From assembly GCA_020137815.1 (NCBI GenBank), contig CM035352.1:5084001-5148000 (forward strand): a DNA stretch of 64,000 nucleotides, in the 5' to 3' direction. The stretch comes from Hormiphora californensis (taxonomy: Eukaryota > Animalia > Ctenophora). Made by a program: the position numbers and the translations under genes. The notes below the pieces were generated by a model. It made no database searches, was not told the DNA's origin, and saw only the letters and a program-made list of their open reading frames with translations. Shown here one piece after another: positions 1 to 64,000 of the stretch (position 1 is the first letter of the stretch; every line of letters begins with the position of its first letter).

Positions 1-780
1 TATGACTGTCTAAAGACGAAATTCAACCAGCATTTTTGAGGGGATCACGTGTCCTCAACAAATGGGTAAAATGATTTGAAATTTACAAGAGCTTCATTGG
101 AATCGTCTAAGGTTCATCTTGATACCATGGTTTTTTTCCATAGCTCTACGTTTAAGTTGCGTTATGACTGTAGGAACATGAAGATTTTTCTATGCTGAGT
201 CTTAGTTGGTATCGGCTCACAACCCCTAATTAGGTGGCTCGGTGTCGTGTGTAATCCCATGATAATCAGCACATATCGTCTCAATTTCATCTAGACACTT
301 GACAGGGTTGTTATGACGATTTGGCAAGGCCCCTGTTAATGTGTAGGATACGCAAGTGGTCTATATCAACCCTATCATGCACTAAGATGTTATTCAAGCA
401 GCTATGAGCTTCATAACAGGGCAAAATGCAATGCGATACCTGAAACCACTTTTGGGAAAATTCCAGTTCTGACAGTCATAAGACATTCTAAACATTGAGC
501 TAGGATAAAAACCCGGGTACCAAAATGACCGCCAGACAATTTCCTACAACTCTTATGAGGGATGCAATGTGATCCAAGCAACTTTGCACTTGTGAATTTT
601 TCAAAACGTGAACCCCGGTCGGATTTCATGAACACGTAATTTTGACTTTACGACGATATATCTGACAATTGGTAAGACTTGGAAAGTCAATCTTGCAACC
701 AAAATGTTCGCCAGACAATTCTCTAGAACACTGGTTTTTGTTAGAACCATTTTGACCGATTTTTCGATCAGTTTTGGTTA

Positions 781-1711
781 ATTATTATAATGAGATCTGA
801 TCAGGATTAAATAGGGAGGAAACTAGAAAAATATCTGGCGAGGGCCGGGCTCGAACCGACAACCTCTGCATTACATGTACATTGCTCTAACCTATTGAGC
901 TACCTCGCCTACAATTTATCTACATTTCCTCTCTCTATATCACTGATCATGCCCTTAGATATTGCAGCTGTAACTCATATAGGAACAAGATAGATAGTAT
1001 CTTCACTCGCTGCATTCTCACGTTTCTCTCTTTTCTCACACAACACGCCCTACTGTACAACAGTGAAGGGGAAACATACAGCGGGCAGATCTCAGGGTGG
1101 AAGGGTCATTTGTTAATTATTATAATGAGATCTGATCAGGATTAAATAGGGAGGAAACTAGAAAAATATCTGGCGAGGGCCGGGCTCGAACCGACAACCT
1201 CTGCATTACATGTACATTGCTCTAACCTATTGAGCTACCTCGCCTACAATTTATCTACATTTCCTCTCTCTATATCACTGATCATGCCCTTAGATATTGC
1301 AGCTGTAACTCATATAGGAACAAGATAGATAGTATCTTCACTCGCTGCATTCTCACGTTTCTCTCTTTTCTCACACAACACGCCCTACTGTACAACAGTG
1401 AAGGGGAAACATACAGCGGGCAGATCTCAGGGTGGAAGGGTCATTTGTTAATTATTATAATGAGATCTGATCAGGATTAAATAGGGAGGAAACTAGAAAA
1501 ATATCTGGCGAGGGCCGGGCTCGAACCGACAACCTCTGCATTACATGTACATTGCTCTAACCTATTGAGCTACCTCGCCTACAATTTATCTACATTTCCT
1601 CTCTCTATATCACTGATCATGCCCTTAGATATTGCAGCTGTAACTGTGTGAGAAAAGAGAGAAACGTGAGAATGCAGCGAGTGAAGATACTATCTATCTT
1701 GTTCCTATATG
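781..1711 (-). mobile_element. Tandem tRNA-like retro-insertion, family A (2.6 x 335-bp units plus inverted 5' segment)
   Basis: Units start at 781, 1116 and 1451. 1645-1715 is the reverse complement of unit sequence. TSD AGTTTTGGTTA at 770-780 and 1712-1722; a single copy is present at the empty paralogous site 6699-6709. Confidence 0.9.
836..909 (-). ncRNA. tRNA-like cloverleaf (Thr-UGU-like, non-canonical A33); further copies at 1171-1244 and 1506-1579
   Basis: GGCGAGG/CCTCGCC acceptor stem, GCTC/GAGC D stem, loop CATGTAA, GTCGG-TTCGAGC-CCGGC T arm, followed by T5. Confidence 0.8.
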
Positions 1712-1887
1712 AGTTTTGGTTAGTTTAATGGAGCCCGGTCATGACCCAAAATCGCAGGTGATGCAAAGACAGTGGGACACCCTGTAGTATCCACTATCCA
1801 CTTTATTTATTGCTTATTATTCTTATAGATATGCTTATTCCCACATAGTAGTATCCACTGTAATTATTGCTTATTCCCACCACCCAG

Positions 1888-3299: not shown

Positions 3300-4280
3300 G
3301 GCAGCTTCTCCCATCATACAGCACTTGCCATCCTTTCTAGCATACCCTCCACCATCGTAATCCCCACGACACCACACGTCACCATACCCCCATGACACCC
3401 CATCATAACCCCACCATACCACCTTGACACCCCATCACACCCCCGTGACACCCCCATCATACACCCATGACACCCCACTATACCCCCGTGACACCCCATC
3501 ATACCCCCGTGACACCCCATCATACCCCACCATACCCCCATGACACCCCATCATAACCACTACTGAACCATTCCAACACCGTGAACCCCATATACCCCCA
3601 CAACACCCCCTAACCCACCGTGACACCCCATCATACCCCGTGACACCCCATACCCACCCATACCCCCGTGACCACCCCCAACATACCCCAATGACACCCC
3701 ACATACCATGGGACACCCATCATACCCCCGTGACAACCCATCATACCCCGCGTGACACCCCATCATACCCCACCATACCCCCGTGACACCCCCATAACAC
3801 CCCCATGGACACCCCATATACCCCCGTGGACACCCCATCCCTACCCCGTCGTGACACCCCATCATACCCCGGACACCCCACTATACCCCCGTGACACCCC
3901 ATCACACCCCCAGTGACACCCCCCATCATACCCCCATGACACCCCACTATACCCCCGTGACACCCCATCATACCCCCGTGACACCCCATCATACCCCACC
4001 ATACCCCCGTGACACCCCCATCATACCCCCGACACTAACACACATAATGACACCCAATCATCCCCAGTGACACCCCATCATACCCCCCGTGACACCCACC
4101 ATAACCCGTGCACCCCATCATACCCCCGCTCGATCACCCCATCATTTCACCCACTTCATACCCCCGTGACACCCCACCATACCCCCGTGACACCCCATCA
4201 TACCCCGTGACACCCATATACCCCAGTGACACCACACCATACCCCACCATACCCCCACCATACCCCCATGACACCCTCAC
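3300..4280. repeat. C-rich minisatellite (~21-bp CCCCCGTGACACCCCATCATA)
   Basis: Degenerate tandem repeats visible directly. Confidence 0.92.
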
Positions 4281-4778: not shown

Positions 4779-7700
4779 ATGAGTGCCTTGCGAGCAGCCC
4801 TCAGACCTGTATGTAGGATGGGCGGGGGGTCTACACTACAGAGAAACTACTACACCTGTACCCCTCCTTGCATCCCCGCCTCCTTGATTGCTCCTTCACG
4901 CCGCTTTTATCCCAAGGTACTGATTCAGGTTCGTCACACCCACTAACACACACCCACTAACATCGCACAGTTTTTAGTAAATCACATTTATTTGTTACAT
5001 AAAACAGAAACAAATGATATGTTTCCTTGCTTTCATGGTGAGTGGTGTCCAGGAAACCGACCCCAATCAGGAAATACTGGTCCCTGATTGGCTATATAAC
5101 CAGTCATCGTGACCTAAATAACGAGTTCTGATTGGTGTTTCGGTCGGTTCCTCCTGGTTGGTGTCACAATCAATATTCCGCACGCACCGGTTCGGAGAGG
5201 GGGTGGTCTAATCACAACTAATCACTGTATTATTGCCCCCCAGATTCACGCACTGGGTTATCAGCGCTGTCAATGAAATACAACACGAGGACGGTGCTGG
5301 TTCTGCACCTACATTACCGGGGGAGCTATCAGAGTTCAAGTTTATACCATGCAGAGGTGTAGTATTATATGTCGAAAACAGTTCCAGGATGAGAAGATTG
5401 CGGTTAGTGTTATAGAGCTCCACGGTGGGCCTCTCCTTAGTTGGTAGTTAGAACTTCATGGGTCCCACTACCTGTTAGAACCACACTCAAACTCTCTTGT
5501 ACCCCCCCTGAGAAGTGAGAACCACCACTCCCCATGTAACAATGAACCACTCTCCAGAAAGTTGGCCTACAAATCAATGTACAGGGTGTCCCACTGTCTT
5601 TGCATCACCTGCGATTTTGGGTCATGACCGGGCCCCATTAAACTAACCACAACTGATCGAAAAAATTGGTCAAAATGGTTCTAACAAAAACCAGTGTTCT
5701 AGAGAATTGTCTGGCGAACATTTTGGTTGCAAGATTGACTTTCCAAGTCTTACCAATCGTGCAGATATATCGTCGTAAAGTCAAAATACGTGTTCATGAA
5801 ATCCGACCGGGGTTCACGTTTTGAAAAATTCACAAGTGCAAAGTTGCTCGGATCACATTGCATCCCCATAAGAGTTGTAGGAAATTGTCTGGCGGTCATT
5901 TGGTACCCGGGTTTTTGTCCTAACTCAATGTTTAGAGTGTTTATGACGTCTAAAGAGAGAAATTCAACCAGCATTTTTGAGGGGATCACGTGTCCTCAAC
6001 AAATGGGTAAATGATTTGAAATTTACAAGAGCTTCATTGGAACGTCTAAGGTTCATCTTGATACCATGGTTTTTTCCATAGCTCTACGTTTAAGTTGCGT
6101 TATGACTGTAGGAACATGAAGATTTTTTCTATGCTGAGTCTTAGTTGGTATCGGCTCACAACCCCTAATTAGGTGGTCGGTGTCGTGTGTAATCCCATGA
6201 TAATCAGCACAATCGTCCTCAATTTCATTTAGGACACTTGACAGGTTGTTATGACGATTTGGCAAGGCCCCTGTTAAGTGTAGGATACGCAAGTGGCTGA
6301 TATCAACCTATCATGCACTAAGATGTTATTCAAGCAGCTATGAGCTCATAACAGGGCAAAATGCAATGCGATACCTGAAACCACTTTTGGGAAAATTCCA
6401 GTTCTGACAGTCATAAGACATTTCACATTGAGCTAGGATAAAAACCCGGGTACCAAAATGACCGCCAGACAATTTCCTACAACTCTTATGAGGGATGCAA
6501 TGTGATCCAAGCAACTTTGCACTTGTGAATTTTTCAAAACGTGAAACCGGTCGGATTTCATGAACACGTAATTTTGACTTTACGACGATATCTGACAATT
6601 GTGTAAGACTTGGAAAGTCAATCTTGCAACCAAAAGTTCGCCAGACAATTCTCTAGAACACTGGTTTTGTTAGAACCATTTTGACCGATTTTTCGATCAG
6701 TTTTGGTTAGTTTAATGGAGCCCGGTCATGACCCAAAATCGCAGGTGATTGCAAAGACAGTGGGGACACCCTGTAGTATCCAAATCCATTTATTATTGCT
6801 TATTATTCTTATAGATATGCTTATTCCACATAGTAGTTATCCACTGTAATTATTGCTATTCCCACCACCCAGGTCGAGTTAGATCTGAACAACAGACGAG
6901 TTGCACTGCTGAGGAAGACCTGAGGAAACACCACCCCAATACCTGCCTAGCTTACTATTGACATTACCAAGTCTCAGGTAACACGCCACCCCAATACCTC
7001 CTAGCTTTACTAATGACATTACAAGTCCCAGGTAATACCTGCCTAGCTTTACATTGACATTAACAAGTCCCAGGTAACACGCCACCCAATACCTGCCTAG
7101 CTTTACTATGGCATTACCAAGTCTCAGGTAATACCTGCCTAGCTTTACTTGACATTACCAAGTCCCAGGTAACACGCCACCCCAATACCTGCCTAGCTTT
7201 ACTATTGACATTACCAAGTCTCAGGTAATACCTGCCTAGCTTTACTATTGACATTACCAAGTCTCAGGTAACACGCCACCCCAATACCTGCCTAGCTTTA
7301 CTATTGACATTACCAAGTCTTAGGTACAATCACAATCATGAGTTCCCCTCCCTATTTTCCGCCAAAAATATTAAACAACAGATTTAAGGCTGCAAAAAAG
7401 TTGTGTGTTCTTAGTTACTCATATCACATGGCACACATTTACACACAAAAAAAGACAAACACACCAACACAAACCAACACATCTACGTCACATAAAATTA
7501 CTGTTTTTAATTCTCTGGTCCCCTCTCTCTCCTCGCATCACACGCCCTTGGGGCCACCACCACTGGGTGCTGCTCCATTATATAGAGTCACGTAGTGCTG
7601 CGGCGACGGCTGCAGCTGACATCTCCGTGAGATCTTCCTCTGACAAGTTGTTGGTGTTGTCGTGGTGCCCGCCAAGTGAGTCAAATACTGAGGGGAGGGG

Positions 7701-31800: not shown

Positions 31801-34800
31801 GGGGGGTGAGTTAGGAGGCAGGATAACCTAGGGAAGGGGGGTGAGTTAGAAGGCAGGATAACCTAGGGAAGGGGGTGAGTTAGGAGGCAGGATGACCTGG
31901 GGAAGGGGGGTGAGTTAGGAGGCAGGATGACCTGGGGAAGGGGGTGAGTTAGGAGGCAGGATAACCTAGGGAAGGGGGTGAGTTAGGAGGCAGGATGACC
32001 TGGGGAAGGGGGTGAGTTAGGAGGCAGGATGACCTGGGGAAGGGGGTGAGTTAGAAGGCAGGATAACCTAGGGAAGGGAGGTGAGTTAGGAGGCAGGATG
32101 ACCTGGGGAAGGGGGTGAGTTAGGAGGCAGGATGACCTGGGGAAGGGGGTGAGTTAGGAGGCAGGATGACCTGGGGAAGGGGGTGAGTTAGGAGGCAGGA
32201 TGACCTGGGGAAGGGGGTGAGTTAGGAGGCAGGATGACCTGGGGAAGGGGGTGAGTTAGGAGGCAGGATGACCTGGGAAAGGGGGGTGAGTTAGGGGTCA
32301 GGATAACCTGGGGAAGGGGGTGAGTTAGGGGTGAGGATAACCTGGGGAAGGGGGTGAGTTAAGAGGCAGGATGACCTGGGGAAGGGGGTGAGTTAGGGGT
32401 CAGGATAACCTGGGGAAGGAGGTGAGTTAGGAGGCAGGATAACCTAGGGAAGGGGGTGAGTTAGGGGTCAGGATAACCTGGGGAAGGGGGGTGAGTTAGG
32501 AGGCAGGATGACCTAGGGAAGGGGGTGAGTAAGAAGGCAGGATAACCTAGGGAAGGGGGGTGAGTTAGGGGTCAGGATAACCTAGGGAAGGGGGTGAGTT
32601 AGGGGTCAGGATAACCTAGGGAAGGGGGGTGAGTTAGGGGTCAGGATGACCTGGGGAAGGGGGGTGAGTTAGGAGGCAGGATAACCTAGGGAAGGGGGTG
32701 AGTTAGGAGGCAGGATGACCTGGGGAAGGGGGGTGAGTTAGGGGTCAGGATAACCTAGGGAAGGGGGGTGAGTTAGGGGTCAGGATAACCTGGGGAAGGG
32801 GGGTGAGTTACGAGGCAAGATGACCTGGGGAAGGGGGTGAGTTAGGAGGCAGGATGACCTGGGGAAGGGGGTGAGTTAGGAGGCAGGATGACCTGGGGAA
32901 GGGGGGTGAGTTAGGGGTCAGGATAACCTGGGGAAGGGGGTGAGTTAGGAGGCAGGATGACCTGGGGAAGGGGGTGAGTTAGGAGGCAGGATGACCTAGG
33001 GAAGGGGGGTGAGTTAGGGGTCAGGATGACCTAGGGAAGGGGGGTGAGTTAGGAGGCAGGATGACCTGGGGAAGGGGGGTGAGTTAGGAGGCAGGATGAC
33101 CTGGGGAAGGGGGTGAGTTAGGAGGCAGGATGACCTGGGGAAGGGGGGTGAGTGAGGGCCTGTCACCTTATATCCCTTTGTCACCCCTGTCACCTTATCT
33201 CCAATTGTAACCCCTGTCACTTTGCCTCCCATTGTAACCCCTGTCACTTTGCCTCCCACTGTCTCCCATGTCACTGAACTATCACACTCACGGGAATTTG
33301 AAATGTTTGTAAAAAATTAAAGAATACGGATACAAATCATCCAAATATTAACAAAATATATTGTCATCTAACTGTTCTGTCCTTACATTCCCACACTCCT
33401 AGACAAATACTCCTCTTCGTGAATAACCCGAATGGAGACAATCTCACTCCCGTTCCCTCTCATCGATATTATCTCTCTGTCAGACCCTTTCTCTATCTCT
33501 CAGCAACCGACCGGACCAAATAAACAACCAATCCGAGCTCATTATTCAGGTCACGTGACTGGTTATCAGCCAATCGATTGTTAAAACATGTAATGAACTG
33601 GCCTGTGTGTCTGTCTGTGTGTCTGTCTGTGATCTGTTTGTATGTCTGTGATCTGTTTGTATGTCTGTCATATTTTATGAACACGGACCTGTGTAGAGGT
33701 CGGAAGAAAATTCTTGAATCTCCAATCTCCATGTTTCACTCTGATATTACAAGCCGAACTCAACCAATTTCAAAGTATGACTCGTACCGGAACAGATTAA
33801 TCTTCCAGATTTTATCTGCAGGTTCGTCTTAGTTTGAGGGTTGCCATAGCGTTTTTCTGTTTTCGCTCAATTTATCAGCACCATGATTTTAACATTCCGC
33901 CCGAAGGGCGGGCGGCCCATCTCTTTATAATGCTGCTGCAGGCTGCTGCAGGCTGCTGCAGTTGTAATTTGTGCGTCTGTTTGTCTGTGCGTCTGTTTGT
34001 CTGCAGCTGCTGCTCTGGAGTTACTTTCAAGACTAGCAAGAATTCTAACACATTTTATACTTCACTGCGTGTTAAATGAAAATTAACTTCGTTTGTGATT
34101 TTATCCAAAATATTGAAGTAAGATTGCGATTTTGAAGCACATGTACACTTTTGTTCGATTAAGTTACTTTTAGGCATTTTGAATACAGTTCTGAAGAAGT
34201 ATTTTTAGGAATGAAGTAATTACTGAAGTATATGCAAGTGAAGTACTTTTTAGGTGCTTTTGTTGCTATTATGATGAAGTATTTTTTTGAGTGAAGTAAT
34301 TACTGAAGTATCTACCACGAAAAATTATGCTTCAGTCGATATCAGTCTAGCAACGGAAGTATTTTCAAAACTGTAATATAAGTGAAGTAACCAACAGAGT
34401 AAGGCATCAATTTTGATGCCTGACATCAATTTGAGACAAATTTGATGATAGCTGATAATTGGAAGTCCTGCAGAATTCCTTCAGGATTCTTGTGGTATAA
34501 GTCATAAATCGTTTGACGTACTATTTGGGCTTCTATGACAATTTTAGTTCCGAAAAACCCTCTAAAAAACTTTAAAGTCGATTTTCTCGAAACTTAAAAA
34601 ATGCAAATACTTCATTCTAAAAAAAAGGGGCAGTGTTATGATCACATACTTCATCAGCGTCTTTTCTATTCGCATCTCGATGGCTACAAGTGTAATTTTC
34701 ATTGGCATCCGAACTGGAATTACCCTATTTCCGCTAAGGGTTAACACCGCCCGTCAGAAGTCTGTTAACATCGTTGTCGTGGTTACCTACTTGGTTACCT

Positions 34801-37800
34801 TAGCAACCGTCATCTTCGAAATCGGATCTTCTTTTACGGTCCCACAGTTGTTTGACACAGATTCCGATGAAGCTGAATCCGATGTTGTTCGTCAAATTAA
34901 AGGAATTATAGATGACTGCTTCTATGATCCAGGGAAGAGCTACTTCGTTGCAAGAGTATTCGGATGGACTAACAACGACTACGAATTTGGTGATATATTT
35001 TTGCTAAGAATTGGAATGACACTAGTCCCGACTATTCTGGTCTGCCTGGTTATTGCCATTTGCACCGGTGCTCAAGTGTACATCCTCCTCCGCAAGACAC
35101 CAGTGAATCAGGTCGGAAACAAAGAGAAAAGAGATCACGCCATAACTTTTACCATCATTTCCATCCTGTTTGTGGTATGTAACATCGCGCCACTCTACAA
35201 TACTGTCCATGACAGTTTGGAAAAGGGGAATCTACTTGAGCGGTACGTAACCAGCTACTTTTTCATGTTCCTGAATGCAGCCCTGAATCCAATGATAATC
35301 ATCTTAAGATCCAGCGGAGGGCTGCAGAGGTTGGGCACCAAACTCAAGACCCAGGCAAAGATGCGGAGAAGGAGCACGCCTGCAACTCTGAGGACCATGG
35401 CGGGAGACGAATCCAAGAGGATTAGTGTAGAATCCAAAAGAATCAGTGCCGAATTGGGCGGGATGAGGAGTGGAGATATGAGGGCGGGCAGCGTGGAGTC
35501 AGTAGCAGTCTGCAGGGTTTCAATGTCACAAATCGCCAGGGACCACAGTTCTCAAACTTTGAACGAACTGAGGTCTGAGAATAGGGTCAGACCAATGCTC
35601 TGACAGGTCTTCGAGGTTACTCTTATAGACAGACACTATAGACAGATGAACTATTCCCAACTATCTAATTATTAGTTGTCTATTTAGCACGCCCAAAGTA
35701 GCCTAAAGCTGAGTAAATCTGGCATCTTGTTAGTCTTCAGAGCGGACAGACTTCAGAAACATTTGGTCTTTAGTTTAGAACTAGTAACTAATAGCTGTAC
35801 ACGCATCATGTTTAGACTTTCCAATTTTAGTGATTGATTTTAACAATAAATCTTGTTTAGACATTCCAATTTTAGTGATTGATTTTAACAATAATTCTTG
35901 TTTAGATTTTCCAATTTTAGTGATTGATTTTAAGAATAAATCTTGTTTAGACATTCCAATTTTAGTGATTGATTTTAACAATAATTCTTGTTTAGATTTT
36001 CCAATTGTAGTGATTAAATCACTGATTGATTTTAACAATTCAACTTGTGCTATTTACTCTCGACCATCTTTTTAAAACCCCCTACGTCACAATCCCGCCG
36101 AACAGGTGTGATAGTCTTGTGGGACTACCTGGGGGCCCTCTAAACACTTCCAGGTGGCATGGTTAACAGTGTTATTATAGAGGAGGTGGTTGATGTAATC
36201 TTGGACCACATCCAAAAAAATTTAGTGTCGGGTCCCGGAACTATTATTGTACAATAGTCATCAGTCTTTACTACAAAGTAGAAACGAACACGTGAATTGG
36301 GTTGCGGACAAGTCTCATGCTGTCTGGCGGCGCCCACCTGAGCACACTGTCTTGTACCGGGGAATCAAACCGGGGTCTGGCGCTGCCAGACAGGTCTGAT
36401 GTAAGTGTGCATCAGGAACCGACCGAATCAGGAAATACTGGTCCCTGATTCGCTGATAACCAGTCACGTGACCTAAATAACGAGTGCTGATTGGTCGTTT
36501 ACTTGTGTCGGTCGGTTCCTGGTGTGCATGTTTTACCCTTGATTGAAGGTCCGGAGTTAATATTCAGGAAGACTTTCAGCAGTTCCTCCTGTACAGAGGA
36601 GTGCCCTGACTTGGTCTTGTCTCTGATGAGCTGACCCGTGGTATCACTCCTGAAATGATGATATATAATGATATATAATGGCTCTTAAGGGTACGCTAAC
36701 CAAAAATTTTTTTCGAGTGCAGGGAAATCTCTCACCGTAGGGTTGTAGGCCATGCCAAGGAGACCTCAAATATGCAATTTGAGCTCTCAAGTCGAATTCA
36801 TATTTTTGCTACAGCTGCTTGAAAAATGAACTGAAAATAAGTTTTTGGCATCTCAAAAAAATTTTTTTAAAAATAGGAGCAAGAAAATTTGGGGATTTGA
36901 AGAGGACATGAAGGTGAATAACCACAAAATGTTTTTTTGCAATCCGAGCTGATTTCCGGTCCTGAGATGGATTTCTTTTTTTCCACTTTAACGCCCTATT
37001 TGGCAAAGTTCCGAAAACATGTGAAAGCTGTAAATTGGTGAAAAGTTGCGTCTAACGATTATCTAAGTGGCCATAAATTTTGGGCGTGTCCTTATTTGAG
37101 ATAAGCTGTACAGAGTTTTTTTGTGAAAGCCGTCATTTCAGAAATAAATAAATTCCCTGTATCTCAAAAACGGCTGATCGTAGAGACCTGAGACTATGCT
37201 TAAACGATTCAGAAGGTCCGATTTTGGGGGGGTCTACTGAGAGACATTTTGCTCCTACTTCAACCGTTTTTGCTGTAATTGCGAAAAACAAAAACCCATC
37301 TTCGCCATCGTGGATTTTTTGTGATTTTGTTTTTGGTGATTATAGGGACCCATATGGACCAAATAGTGAAGGAATTAGCTTGTTACACATTTTTCCATAG
37401 TTTCGGTCCTTTCTTAGCTAAAATTCCCTAATTACAGGATATTGGAGTTTAGCTTTTGCCCTTTTCATAGAATTTGTTTTTCGCAATTACAGCAAAAACG
37501 GTTGAAGTAGGAGCAAAATGTCTCTCAGAAGACCCCCCCAAAATCGGACCTTCTGAATCGTTTAAGCATAGTCTCAGGTCTCTACGATCAGCCGTTTTTG
37601 AGATACAGGGAATTTATTTATTTCTGAAATGACGGCTTTCACAAAAAAAACTCTGTACAGCTTATCTCAAATAAGGACACGCCCAAAATTTATGGCCACT
37701 TAGATAATCGTTAGACGCAACTTTTCACCAATTTACAGCTTTCACATGTTTTCGGAACTTTGCCAAATAGGGCGTTAAAGTGGAAAAAAAGAAATCCATC

Positions 37801-61800: not shown

Positions 61801-64000
61801 CCAATCCCTCAAACACTTCAGGACGTGAGTGATGACATCTGACATCGTTGAGGCGTCAAAATAACCACTGTTTACCAATTCCTCTGCTATCTTGCATCTG
61901 AGATAGAGAGAGGGGAGAGGGAGTCAGGAGAGGAAGAGGGGAGAGCGGAAAGATATATTTAGCAGAGAGAGATTTGAATTCAGAATTCGGGAATGCTTGC
62001 CAGAGCACGATGGAGAAAGTCCAAAATGAAAATGCGCCCCTCCCCCCTCTTCTGACGATGCGCGCCCCACTCCAAACTTTTATCATAACTGTGTCATCGC
62101 GCCCTACGTCAGGTTCTGTTACCGCCAATCAAAAACTGTGACTTGATCTGCCCCACAACCCACAAAATTCCGTCTCAGATAAGAAGACGTACACCGTTCT
62201 GATGAAATTATCACACTTCACAGCTGTCACTTGTCAGTTAACTTACAATATTATTTTCTTCTGGTCGAGTGTACGGTTGTTAAGATCTTGAAAGAGGAAT
62301 GGAAATGTGGTGGAGCGCCTCTCTTTAGCAAGGGGTTGATCATCGCTAGATCGGATCGAACTAAGTTGACCATGGGCCAGGATAGCTTTGGAGCACAGGT
62401 TACAAAATATAGTAGTCGCGCTGAAATAAAAAGAAATGTTATATAGCGGTGTCTCCTTGTCTTGTTCGACCCTCCCTCCCCTAAAAAGGGCTTGAACAAA
62501 ACAAGTGTCTCCCACTCAAATTATTATAGGAATTCAACTTACAGAGATCCAAAGGGGCTTGTGTCACGCATTTCCATGTCTGAAATCAGGCCTTCATAAA
62601 CCGATCTGATCACCTAAAAAATCTGAATTTTAGGATCGGGTATTCACTCACATTACACAAAAATAAAAACTCTCGAAACTTTTCCCGCACTATGTGTGTA
62701 AGTATGAGCGGCTAGGATGTTGCCAGTTGCCCGCACTAACCTCATCTAGATGTTGACCCCTCTCATTTTCATCCAGTTGCAACCAGAGGGAGATAACGGA
62801 TCCAGCAAACTCCATAACCTCACCCTGTATAATTGGGATCAAACTGGCAACATGTGTATTGTATTTCTCTCGGGGGAATTTGTAAGGAGGCATTATACAT
62901 GATATACTGTCTCGGTATAAGAGACTTTCTGGTACAAACAAGACATATTTTTTAGATCTGCGTTATGAGTTATGTTCCAACAGGGAACATAACGACAGTG
63001 CATGATATCCAGCACCTACCTTATTTCCTGAATAATGAGTTCAGAGCAAGAATTAAATAGGGAAGAAAATCGAAAAATACTGGGTTTGACCGGGAATTGA
63101 ACCAGGGACCTCCAGAGAGACATGCCAAACCCAGTATTTTTCGATTTTCTTCCCTATTTAATTCTTGCTCTGAACTCATTATTCAGAATACTAATTAATC
63201 TCTCCTTAACCGAGTTCTGCCCGTGTATGTGTGAGATTCCCCATTAAACTGTTGTACAGAGGGCGTGTGTGTGTGTTGATCACCAGAAGGAGATATCATA
63301 ATTACTTCCCTTTATCACATGGTGTCTAGCTAAGGGCAGGAGCTTGAATATAGAGCGATGAAATGCGATCAGTACATAGGGTTTGGTAGCTTAGTGGTTT
63401 ATAGCTCCGAGCATGTCTCTCTGGAGGTCCCTGGTTCAATTCCCGGTCAAACCCAGTATTTTTCGATTTTCTTCCCTATTTAATTCTTGCTCTGAACTCA
63501 TTATTCAGAATACTAATTAATCTCTCCTTAACCGAGTTCTGCCCGTGTATGTGTGAGATTCCCCATTAAACTGTTGTACAGAGGGCGTGTGTGTGTGTTG
63601 ATCACCAGAAGGAGATATCAAAATTACTTCCCTTTATCACATGGTGTCTAGCTAAGGGCAGGAGCTTGAATATAGAGCGATGAAATGCGATCAGTACATA
63701 GGGTTTGGTAGCTTAGTGGTTTATAGCTCCGAGCATGTCTCTCTGGAGGTCCCTGGTTCAATTCCCGGTCAAACCCAGTATTTTTCGATTTTCTTCCCTA
63801 TTTAATTCTTGCTCTGAACTCATTATTCAGAATACTAATTAATCTCTCCTTAACCGAGTTCTGCCCGTGTATGTGTGAGATTCCCCATTAAACTGTTGTA
63901 CAGAGGGCGTGTGTGTGTGTTGATCACCAGAAGGAGATATCAAAATTACTTCCCTTTACCTTATTTCCCTTGTAAAGCAATGCCCGGGTAGGTTTAACGA
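13657..64000 (-). CDS. ATM: ATM serine/threonine kinase (PIKK family), multi-exon; 5' end lies beyond the window
   Basis: GT-AG exons that join in frame: 15920-16060 (GGINVPK...RQFVK), 15591-15689 (GNDDMRQD), 15163-15351 (VLPLSQVSGLIEW), 14691-14924 (VGLGDRHLANILLD..GELIHIDLG), 14416-14544 (PERVPFRLTRDMVDGLG), 14086-14209 (LEVFLHDPLYNW), 13657-13826 (FATC). Upstream exons, e.g. ~47175-47337 (LLHRWI..SSFPYSHFGY...FYR), resemble ATM N-terminal/FAT regions. Exons above ~48 kb are assigned mainly from strand, splice sites and continuity. Confidence 0.93.
13963..14071. mobile_element. ~108-bp hAT-type MITE. Other copies: ~3017-3133, ~5050-5151, 15796-15910, 25337-25444, ~33502-33575 (partial), 36413-36521, 38420-38528, 39672-41103 (split)
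   Basis: CAGGAACCGACCG...CGGTCGGTTCCTG termini; 8-bp TSDs CTAACAAG, CCTCCTTA, GTGTGCAT, GTTATACC. Confidence 0.92.
14691..14924 (-). CDS. ATM: ATM kinase catalytic exon
   Basis: DRHxxN catalytic loop and HIDLG motif; AG/GT boundaries; 234 nt in phase. Confidence 0.95.
16124..16950. mobile_element. MITE with poly-G/poly-C termini (ACATGTTAATT family)
   Basis: GGGG..GACATGTTAATT / AATTAACATGTC..CCCC; TSD AAGTAAA(G); related copy at 27146-28577. Confidence 0.85.
18890..19446 (-). CDS. ATM: ATM FAT-region exon
   Basis: Long helical ORF (ARAHLALALFADEQ) bounded by AG and GT, lying between other ATM exons. Confidence 0.75.
21027..21102. mobile_element. 76-bp element, TTGTC...GACAA, 8-bp TSD
   Basis: TSD CGAGAACT; second copy at 48823-48988 with TSD AACATGGT. 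Confidence 0.85.
22188..25239 (+). pseudogene. Apparently intronless LDL-receptor class A repeat rhodopsin-type GPCR with several frameshifts, nested antisense in an ATM intron
   Basis: Signal peptide; LDLa motifs (CDGHIDCNSGADE, DGVVDCVGGADE, CDLVDDCGDGSDE); TM segments incl. LICATDFCCWMPF and NSVINPLLY. Frame breaks may be consensus errors. Confidence 0.8.
26522..26764. mobile_element. MITE; a related right end lies at ~47550-48163
   Basis: TIR TTATGTTCTAACCCTC / GAGGGTTAGAACATAA. Confidence 0.7.
27146..28577. mobile_element. Poly-G/C-terminus MITE with nested AGCTAAAA-family MITE (27601-28211)
   Basis: Outer TSD TTTTATA; inner GGGG-TCCAGCCC...GGGCTGGA-CCCC with TSD AATTTT; host element matches 16124-16950. 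Confidence 0.88.
28827..35603 (+). CDS. Rhodopsin-class 7TM GPCR, interrupted by a transposon, nested antisense in an ATM intron
   Basis: 28827-29213 has N-glycosylation sites, TM1 and TM2 (LSTSD). 34638-35603 has TM3-7 (LNAALNPMII). Removing 29214-34637 restores the in-frame FYTV-MITYF junction. Confidence 0.85.
30598..30868 (-). mobile_element. tRNA-derived SINE with compound microsatellite tail
   Basis: A box TGGTGTAGTGG, B box GGTTCGAGTCC, pyrimidine-rich body, tail (CATGACAGAC)n(CATAGT)n. Confidence 0.7.
30866..33270. repeat. Compound minisatellite: ~27-bp CCCTGTCACCTT-type repeats flanking a ~34-bp G-rich array (31340-33153)
   Basis: About 50 copies of GGGAAGGGGGTGAGTTAGGAGGCAGGATGACCTG. 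Confidence 0.93.
35805..36040. repeat. 42-bp AT-rich tandem repeat
   Basis: About 5 copies of TCTTGTTTAGAYWTTCCAATTTTAGTGATTGATTTTAACAAT. Confidence 0.9.
36689..38077. mobile_element. Foldback MITE with TTAA TSD and GG termini (Kolobok-like)
   Basis: TTAA|GGGTACGCTAACC...GGTTAGCGTACCC|TTAA; ~600-bp inverted arms. Confidence 0.88.
39736..41065. mobile_element. Near-perfect 1.3-kb palindromic element (TAG..CTA termini, 3-bp TSD, Academ-like) inserted in a hAT MITE
   Basis: TAA|TAGGCCAGTCATATGA...TCATATGACCGGCCTA|TAA; the MITE halves rejoin across it. Confidence 0.88.
41287..41887 (-). CDS. ATM: ATM HEAT/solenoid-region exon
   Basis: 200-codon open frame with CAG acceptor and GTAAGG donor on the ATM strand. 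Confidence 0.7.
44200..44870. repeat. ~24-bp minisatellite GACAGCTGACCCCGCTCCAGTAAA
   Basis: Tandem copies visible directly. Confidence 0.92.
45525..46984. mobile_element. Foldback element with CACGG..CCGTG termini and 4-bp TSD CTCT (Chapaev/CMC-like)
   Basis: ~710-bp inverted arms with a short spacer; no ORF. Confidence 0.88.
47565..48148. mobile_element. AGCTAAAA-family MITE
   Basis: Near-identical to 27601-28211; 6-bp TSD AGGGTT; the empty target GTAAAGGGAGGGTTAGAACATAAC is seen at ~26741. Confidence 0.9.
49814..57529 (+). CDS. Two-exon secreted Cys/His-rich protein with PCSK9-CHRD/resistin-like modules, nested antisense in an ATM intron
   Basis: Exon 1 49814-49919 (MRACLVTLLLVGAATAA signal peptide, phase-1 GT) joins exon 2 57060-57529 (CCTAG acceptor) in frame: KTVVGPRSGP..SEARC..C...KCVAHVGHGGGHLHAVAIC. 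Confidence 0.8.
49969..50488. mobile_element. Poly-G/C-terminus MITE
   Basis: GGGG-TGCAGCCC...GGGCTGCA-CCCC; TSD TATTAAT; T-rich and A-rich inverted arms. Confidence 0.85.
50566..57041 (+). mobile_element. 6.5-kb retroposed insertion: satellite array plus ~790-bp unique 3' end with (CCA)n tail
   Basis: 14-bp direct repeat ACCGATATTGCATC at 50552-50565 and 57042-57055; tail CCACCACCACCACC; stem-loop TGCCC-TAAC-GGGCA just upstream of the tail. Confidence 0.75.
50570..56248. repeat. Satellite array of ~440-bp and ~309-bp units
   Basis: About 16 units; the short unit lacks the CTCAGGTCACGTCC...AAAACTGTCAAATA segment. Confidence 0.95.
59863..60849. mobile_element. Foldback element with TAGGCCAGTCA termini and 3-bp TSD ATA (related to 39736-41065)
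   Basis: ATA|TAGGCCAGTCA...TGACTGGCCTA|ATA; ~430-bp arms. Confidence 0.88.
63029..63956 (+). mobile_element. Tandem tRNA-like retro-insertion, family B (inverted 5' segment plus 2.6 x 322-bp units)
   Basis: 63029-63125 is inverted; direct units run from 63126 with period 322. TSD TACCTTATTTCC at 63017-63028 and 63957-63968. Confidence 0.9.
63379..63455 (+). ncRNA. tRNA-like cloverleaf; second copy at 63701-63777
   Basis: GGGTTTGG/TCAAACCC acceptor stem, A box TAGCTTAGTGG, loop CATGTCT, B box GGTTCAATTCC, followed by T5. Confidence 0.75.

Follow-up and report, generated by a model that had tools for sequence, protein, structure and literature searches.

How does a short non-coding element come to lie in a genome as a run of identical units with an inverted piece at one end? 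The question is raised by a locus near the start of a stretch of 64,000 nucleotides from the ctenophore Hormiphora californensis (assembly GCA_020137815.1, contig CM035352.1, positions 5,084,001 to 5,148,000 of the forward strand), which we call the window throughout. Here, 335-bp units carrying a tRNA-like gene are joined to a short inverted segment and enclosed by a target-site duplication (TSD). An earlier note, made from the letters of the window alone, had taken this insertion, its family A, for a candidate new class of retroelement, reverse-transcribed more than twice around a circular RNA. Our analysis of the family across the genome led us to a more modest description. Family A is probably a young, low-copy, non-autonomous retroelement of the short interspersed nuclear element (SINE) type, with two start sites for complementary DNA (cDNA) in each unit. 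The term 'new class' is too strong, as multimers with a flipped 5' arm have already been described for Penelope-like elements, their non-autonomous derivatives and retrozymes (PMC8557442, PMC7229834).

The anatomy of the window copy is summarised in Table 1. Tandem Repeats Finder reported a period of 335 bp over positions 777-1645, with 2.6 copies, 100% matches and zero indels. We numbered the unit from q1 to q335, with q1 at window position 781; in these terms the direct arm runs q1-335, q1-335, q1-195. Its plus strand is antisense to the tRNA, and the RNA sense of the element is the minus strand. A BLAST search with one unit returned positions 1645-1715 as the reverse complement of q192-262, and the flipped arm (q196-262) is the template stretch that directly follows the point at which the direct arm stops (q195). 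The empty paralogous site at 6699-6709 has flanks homologous to those of the insertion on either side. At the left junction, GTTA (777-780, the last four bases of the TSD) is common to target and unit, a microhomology at the start of the cDNA, and AACT is likewise common to both at the right junction. The 3' end of the copy carries neither poly-A nor a simple-repeat tail. The earlier note had described the identical units, the 11-bp TSD with its empty site, an inverted 5' segment beginning where the direct part stops, and a tailless 3' end with microhomology, and in all of these respects its description holds.

To place this copy within its family, we searched the genome (110,691,255 bases in 45 contigs, ~13 of them chromosome-sized). 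The unit as query gave at least 101 matches, and a conserved motif of the trailer, the segment between tRNA and end1, gave 109 matches against 0 for a reversed control. Three subfamilies were distinguished, namely A (335-bp unit), a relative with a 332-bp unit that is 86% identical to A, and a family with a 322-bp unit (family B of the earlier note); GC content of the units is 0.42-0.44. Statistics on loci refer to the ~40 best-scoring loci out of ~65 or more. The family is mobile: 26 of these 40 loci lie between exact direct repeats that are 8-18 bp long, most commonly 11-13 bp, whereas repeats of at least 8 bp occur in 3% of mismatched flank pairs. When pooled, the nick sites show a weak W^G-T-T context, and junctions often have 1-5 bases in common with the target. 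The occurrence of TSDs at many loci, together with 5'-truncated copies and arms flipped at the 5' end, bears out the proposal of a non-autonomous retroelement that spreads by target-primed reverse transcription of a tRNA-sense RNA. In a second, related organism, contigs 90-95% identical to parts of the unit (window 781-1571) were found, so the family is not limited to one species. Three separate insertions lie within 16 kb on contig C7 (C7:827461-843347; loci L001, L060 and L015-L026), namely a 999-bp copy of family A, a 2.4-unit copy of the 332-bp relative and an array of more than 13 units; such clustering could mark a hot spot of insertion or a region from which copies spread.

Where does copying begin? 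Among 62 outer or 3' termini, 56 lie either at q1 (+/-9), referred to as end1, or at q194-202, referred to as end2 (window 974-982, just past the 5' edge of the leader). Random start and end phases had been put forward as a check for a circular template; what we found are specific start sites at two fixed positions of the unit. Read from the flank into the element, the termini always show the anti-tRNA strand, and each terminus thus represents a cDNA start on a tRNA-sense RNA. The terminal 10-13 nt vary among subfamilies while the position of the terminus is constant, so that the neighbouring structure, rather than the sequence of the start site itself, seems to fix its position. The inner ends vary in a way that agrees with 5' truncation. 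Within this variation, the 5' end lies at q111-140 in 11 of 20 simple copies, that is, within ~18 nt of tRNA position 1 (the tRNA 5' end is q129; binomial P = 2e-7), and monomers starting at tRNA position 1 account for about a third of loci and about half of the simple copies. The clustering indicates that many templates were RNAs beginning at the tRNA, as in a SINE that RNA polymerase III (Pol III) transcribes. The earlier statement that the element does not begin at its tRNA is hence correct for the window copy and does not extend to the family. In the flipped copies L001 and L054, the arms reach from end2 back to approximately the tRNA start (258-274 nt) and look like a full-length linear element made up of tRNA, trailer and Y domain, the last being the non-tRNA half of the unit.

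These termini also bear on the notion that the units moved as DNA, be it as a miniature inverted-repeat transposable element (MITE) or other cut-and-paste transposon with tRNA cassettes, as a rolling-circle DNA element or as a re-inserted extrachromosomal circle. Leader and trailer do form an inverted repeat around the tRNA, as such an element might have, but the two outer ends do not form inverted repeats with one another, the TSDs vary in length from 8 to 18 bp, the inner ends vary as they do after 5' truncation, and the strand relations agree with priming of cDNA from each of the two DNA ends. We regard movement as DNA as extremely improbable. A cluster of tRNA genes was considered as well and, like a DNA transposon, rejected in view of the variable TSDs, the strand logic, the non-decoding anticodon arms and the dispersed truncated copies.

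The tRNA-like gene, present once per unit, scores 56.5 bits against the Rfam tRNA model (gathering score 29), and ARAGORN concurs. Its acceptor stem is perfect, the D and T arms are intact, and both promoter boxes, A and B, can be made out. In the anticodon arm, which is degenerate, the loop is CAUGUAA (anticodon UGU, A at position 33) according to Infernal, and the call is Tyr-GTA according to ARAGORN; the anticodon loop of the 332-bp relative differs from that of A, so that CAUGU is not conserved there, and these arms do not look able to decode. Around the intact cloverleaf, each of the three subfamilies is predicted to form a stem of ~35 bp between the 71-nt leader and the 55-nt trailer, and some compensatory pairs are seen across them. 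The acceptor stems also differ among subfamilies, with pairing complete throughout. Between A and the 322-bp family the trailer block is 77% conserved and the tRNA part 59%, and the core of the Y domain is conserved across all three subfamilies. The fold-energy z-score of the tRNA domain on the RNA strand is weak (-1.9), and support for the stem thus comes from its recurrence in three subfamilies and from the few compensatory pairs, not from energy. In the predicted folds, end1 and end2 are located within single-stranded stretches flanking the base of the tRNA-stem domain. Each tRNA is followed by a run of five T (827-831, RNA strand), which pairs with an A-rich stretch of the leader in the fold.

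But how do several units come to lie within a single pair of TSDs? The C7 array of more than 13 units contains twelve complete 332-bp units without any difference and ends in a flipped arm on one side, and in the C1 array of 3.2 units two private substitutions are common to every unit. Several substitution-free copies of family A at unrelated loci (the window copy, L001 and L005) hold 2-3 units. Identical units and young multimers at unrelated loci together indicate that the multi-unit structure was made at or before insertion from one template sequence. Later expansion of single-unit insertions as DNA, through replication slippage or unequal crossing-over, would explain the perfect homogeneity of the arrays and would suit the three neighbouring insertions on contig C7; it is nevertheless very unlikely, given that the substitution-free copies at unrelated loci are already multi-unit, that partial units and flipped arms lie within one TSD pair with the arms in template register, and that the monomer offers no internal repeat from which slippage could start.

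As the seamless repeat has two alternative termini, the template must extend past at least one of them and is hence a multimer or a circle, on which internal starts are possible. Identical units, private variants common to a whole array and the five-T runs favour repeated copying of one unit. In two marine RNA libraries, a contig runs from q230-335 into q1-121 and thus across end1. The circle foreseen in the earlier note would be a unit-length RNA around which the reverse transcriptase (RT) runs several times, with the tRNA-like domain replacing the hammerhead, and it would fit either of the enzyme sources discussed below. Such a circle would readily yield arrays of 2.6 to 13 units without inter-unit differences, including the one in which all units have the same two substitutions as if one monomer had been copied repeatedly, and it would let the template pass at least one of the two termini. 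It would also be in keeping with the five-T run after every tRNA, which makes a 13-unit Pol III transcript unlikely, and circles of retrozymes are made by the host tRNA ligase (PMC7229834). Even so, a circular template appears doubtful to us: no self-cleaving ribozyme was found on either strand at E up to 10, no bulge-helix-bulge-like motif at the two start sites recurs among the predicted folds of all three subfamilies, 3' phases are not random but fixed, and the tRNA-start monomers point to a linear Pol III RNA. Homogeneous genomic arrays could moreover be transcribed as linear multimers, and RNA contigs cannot separate a circle from a tandem transcript. No circle is needed, since these data can also be accounted for by a linear multimeric RNA.

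The flipped arms make use of the same two sites. Of 18 flipped copies with canonical ends, 17 combine end1 with end2 (P = 7e-5 against independent choice), and all outer ends of these 17 loci are canonical (34/34). Since end1 and end2 alternate along a multimeric RNA, second priming at the nearest site further 5' accounts for much of the bias. In template coordinates, the flipped arms of the window copy and of L049, L044 and L031 begin at, or close to, the point at which the direct arm ends; such contiguity is expected when the first cDNA runs up to the second primer. The same kind of structure is found in the 322-bp insertion at the far end of the window, in which a flipped arm (63029-63125, end1 outward) is followed by ~2.6 direct units to end2, with the TSD TACCTTATTTCC at 63017-63028 and 63957-63968. 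Twin priming, the signature invoked in the earlier note, is consistent with the TSDs, the 5' flips and the contiguous arms; the canonical start sites at both outer ends depart from it and are the pattern of Penelope-like elements. Compared with L1 twin priming, the combination of a TSD with a flipped 5' segment is alike, as is the flip adjoining the end of the direct part in the template, whereas the second priming of our family takes place at its own canonical sites (17/18 loci) instead of arbitrary internal positions, and poly-A is absent. Palindromic centres are present at the tRNA-family loci L037 and L013.

We propose the following course of events. The unit comprises a tRNA-derived, putative Pol III promoter module, the leader/trailer stem around the tRNA and domain Y. 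A tRNA-sense RNA, often starting from tRNA position 1, would be copied into the genome by target-primed reverse transcription, with the cDNA starting at one of the two fixed sites per unit and aided by the short microhomology to the nicked target. Of these sites, end1 is located ~55 nt 3' of the tRNA and end2 ~190 nt 3' of it, immediately 5' of the leader that follows. Whenever the template exceeds one unit, the resulting copy would hold several identical units. The second DNA end of the staggered break might prime at a start site further 5' on the RNA and give rise to a flipped cDNA, and priming of this sort could have produced the 66-bp flipped arm of the window copy. Pol III transcription and the origin of the multimeric template are the parts of this scheme that we infer.

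Which element would supply the enzymes? The layout of the copies matches that of Penelope-like elements and their relatives and for this reason points to a Penelope-like source. That a young Penelope-like element of this genome provides the enzymes is, in our estimate, an evenly balanced proposition. Penelope-like elements and non-autonomous derivatives such as MRC1 of Chlamydomonas form partial tandems with pseudo-long terminal repeats (pseudo-LTRs) and an inverted 5'-truncated copy (PMC8557442). Family A resembles them in its head-to-tail copies, in the flipped 5'-truncated arm beside the direct part, in having element 3' termini at both outer ends, in 5' truncation and in variable TSDs, and the layout is also seen in the Penelope-like copies of this genome. 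We obtained 16 genome hits for GIY-YIG. A canonical, young Penelope-like family has a C-terminal GIY-YIG domain (Pfam), intact open reading frames (ORFs) of 790-953 aa and copies that are 99.5-99.7% alike, with Pfam RVT_1 below threshold; one of its loci (L072) has a head-to-head inverted junction and another (L073) a partial tandem. The junction at L072:3500-3600 is palindromic, with two 32-nt arms around a 14-nt spacer, and resembles the centres of L037 and L013. In a Naiad-like family, the GIY-YIG domain is N-terminal and the RT C-terminal; this domain order is seen at L074:3040-5799 (minus strand), together with an intact ORF of 920 aa and a 3' end near L074:2784. About 25 genome loci consist of only the last 100 nt of the Naiad-like element, all with one start position, which suggests a discrete short derivative or a preferred truncation point.

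Several observations weigh against a scheme of this kind. When the three unit types were compared by BLAST with five Penelope-like loci and the window, nothing beyond the elements themselves was returned, and end-anchored local alignments to the 3' ends of the canonical and Naiad-like families all had P above 0.1 against shuffles. No clear TSDs were seen at the few Penelope-like copies examined, and more than 1,399 RVT_1 candidates are present in the genome, APE-type long interspersed nuclear elements (LINEs) included. Beyond the ~40 loci analysed, some head-to-head pairs may have the same start site at both ends. The five-T run should hinder long Pol III transcripts, and the public runs consist of contigs only, which show no RNA ends, strand or circularity. 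Apart from the lack of 3'-end similarity to the two families tested, family A is unlike Penelope-like elements in that neither a 30-40 bp 'tail' nor a microsatellite target bias was recognised, and in its two start sites per unit and its Pol III tRNA head, neither of which we found described for Penelope-like derivatives.

An ordinary LINE-dependent SINE would account for part of the same evidence. The RT of an APE-type LINE would recognise both start sites, twin priming would produce the flips, and read-through of tandem source loci would produce the multimers. LINEs with APE and RT domains are abundant in this genome, with many intact ORFs of ~1,000 aa; the TSDs of 8-18 bp, the 5' truncation and the 5' inversion fit LINE-type target-primed reverse transcription; and the arms are template-contiguous in the window copy and at least at L049, L044 and L031, as in twin priming. 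The many plain monomers from the tRNA start and the missing homology to the tested Penelope-like 3' ends would fit in as well. We nonetheless consider a LINE partner rather unlikely, because the outer end of the flipped arm is nearly always a canonical start site and not an arbitrary internal position, because LINE-driven SINE insertion is not known to yield multimers with as many as 13 identical units (PMC8557442), and because a poly-A or microsatellite tail is absent. Furthermore, the nick context is the weak W^GTT and not TT^AAAA, and the single LINE family compared (L076) showed no similarity to the unit types in BLAST. The search for a partner by matching sequence gave no match to either of two Penelope-like families or to this LINE.

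Irrespective of the enzyme, family A has most of the features by which SINEs are recognised. As in other tRNA-derived SINEs, the tRNA-like head contains box A and box B and 5' ends fall at tRNA position 1; the element is short and non-coding, has TSDs and 5' truncations, and includes a conserved non-tRNA body. Unlike them, it forms seamless multimers of up to 13 units and flipped arms, has two alternative 3' termini without a poly-A or simple-repeat tail, and includes in its repeat unit a leader 5' of the tRNA that pairs with the trailer.

The second obvious comparison is with retrozymes. As defined by Cervera and de la Pena (PMC7229834), metazoan non-LTR retrozymes consist of low-GC tandem units of 150-450 bp whose TSDs exceed 4 bp; their tandem repeats carry a type I hammerhead (PMC7229834; bioRxiv 10.64898/2026.07.22.740005). 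The units of our family are non-coding as well, 322-335 bp long and below 45% GC, occur as dimers to long multimers and have TSDs longer than 4 bp, and the genome also holds Penelope-like elements. Family A lacks the hammerhead that defines a retrozyme. A cmscan search of positions 600-1900 with all Rfam models, on both strands and with E up to 10, returned only the tRNA, as did a scan of the whole window at gathering score, and no hammerhead was found in two Penelope-like loci searched; a genome-wide RF00163 search was silent, controls included, and is therefore uninformative. The retrozyme-like layout without a hammerhead that had been claimed for this locus agrees with these results. In place of a ribozyme, the unit carries a tRNA-like Pol III module in a long stem. 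Many family copies are sub-unit monomers from the tRNA start, in which they differ from retrozymes, and retrozymes are expressed as circular RNA, whereas family A is known from genomic copies and RNA contigs. One could go further and regard the tRNA-in-stem domain as the counterpart of the retrozyme hammerhead: host tRNA enzymes (RNase P/Z or the splicing endonuclease, together with RtcB) would cut multimers at the base of the stem and close circles of ~335 nt, and a telomerase-related Penelope-like RT would bind the domain, start cDNA on either side and run round the circle. This extended reading is, in our judgement, quite unlikely.

Why should such a family be of interest? For Penelope-like elements and retrozymes, the mechanism that gives rise to tandem and flipped insertions has still to be worked out, and an in vitro system has been called for (PMC8557442). 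The present family is a compact natural substrate in this respect, with 322-335 nt, two sharp cDNA start sites, a conserved RNA domain between them and many near-undiverged copies. It indicates that a tRNA-headed SINE can take the multimeric and inverted mode of insertion, of which we found no report in the literature searched; nor did that literature yield a description of SINEs in ctenophores, and the genome paper of Hormiphora californensis describes neither SINEs nor Penelope-like elements (PMC8527503). If the Penelope-like partner is true, the family would be a Pol III SINE dependent on a Penelope-like element. If the circular template is true, retrozyme-like circles would be made without a ribozyme. 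If, in addition, the tRNA stem does act as the counterpart of the hammerhead, one of the earliest-branching lineages of animals would have a way, driven by Pol III and free of ribozymes, of forming retrozyme-like circular RNA replicons.

Table 1 Features of the two insertions and of the empty target site in the window (strand as annotated; q, position in the unit).
Feature	Position	Strand	Remarks
Family A insertion, whole structure	781..1711		between TSD copies; direct arm plus flipped arm
Direct arm, 2.58 identical 335-bp units	781..1645	-	starts at end1 (q1), stops at q195
tRNA-like gene, unit 1	836..909	-	ARAGORN and Rfam tRNA
tRNA-like gene, unit 2	1171..1244	-	ARAGORN and Rfam tRNA
tRNA-like gene, unit 3	1506..1579	-	ARAGORN and Rfam tRNA
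Trailer, 55 nt from tRNA 3' end to end1	781..835	-	pairs with leader
Leader, ~71 nt 5' of tRNA	910..980	-	pairs with trailer
Y domain, non-tRNA half of unit (q202-335)	982..1115	-	3' end in RNA sense is end2
Flipped arm, 66 bp, reverse complement of q196-262	1646..1711	+	outer end is end2
Left TSD copy, 11 bp, AGTTTTGGTTA	770..780	.	
Right TSD copy, 11 bp, AGTTTTGGTTA	1712..1722	.	
Empty paralogous target site, one AGTTTTGGTTA	6699..6709	.	second copy of host repeat
Second insertion of the same kind (322-bp unit; family B of the earlier note)	63029..63956	+	TSD-flanked

The sequence into which the window copy was inserted (500-770 and 1723-1800, with its paralogue at 6430-6900) is a very high-copy repeat, for which the summed contig depth in DNA runs amounts to up to hundreds of thousands. 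Minisatellites of 56 bp follow the host repeat copies at 1948-2340 and 6931-7326. Public runs over the insertion show 'skips' of 947-1,009 bases; these probably reflect empty paralogues and are no proof of an empty allele.

Two further features of the window were noted. At 3383-4276, a degenerate, C-rich satellite whose periods range from 10 to 21 bp (CCCCATGACA-like) makes the GC skew strongly negative over the first 4 kb. Finally, an ORF of 321 aa at 34638-35603 has a weak match to the rhodopsin family of seven-transmembrane (7TM) receptors (E = 3e-4, below the Pfam cut-off) and is probably an exon of a G-protein-coupled receptor (GPCR) gene.

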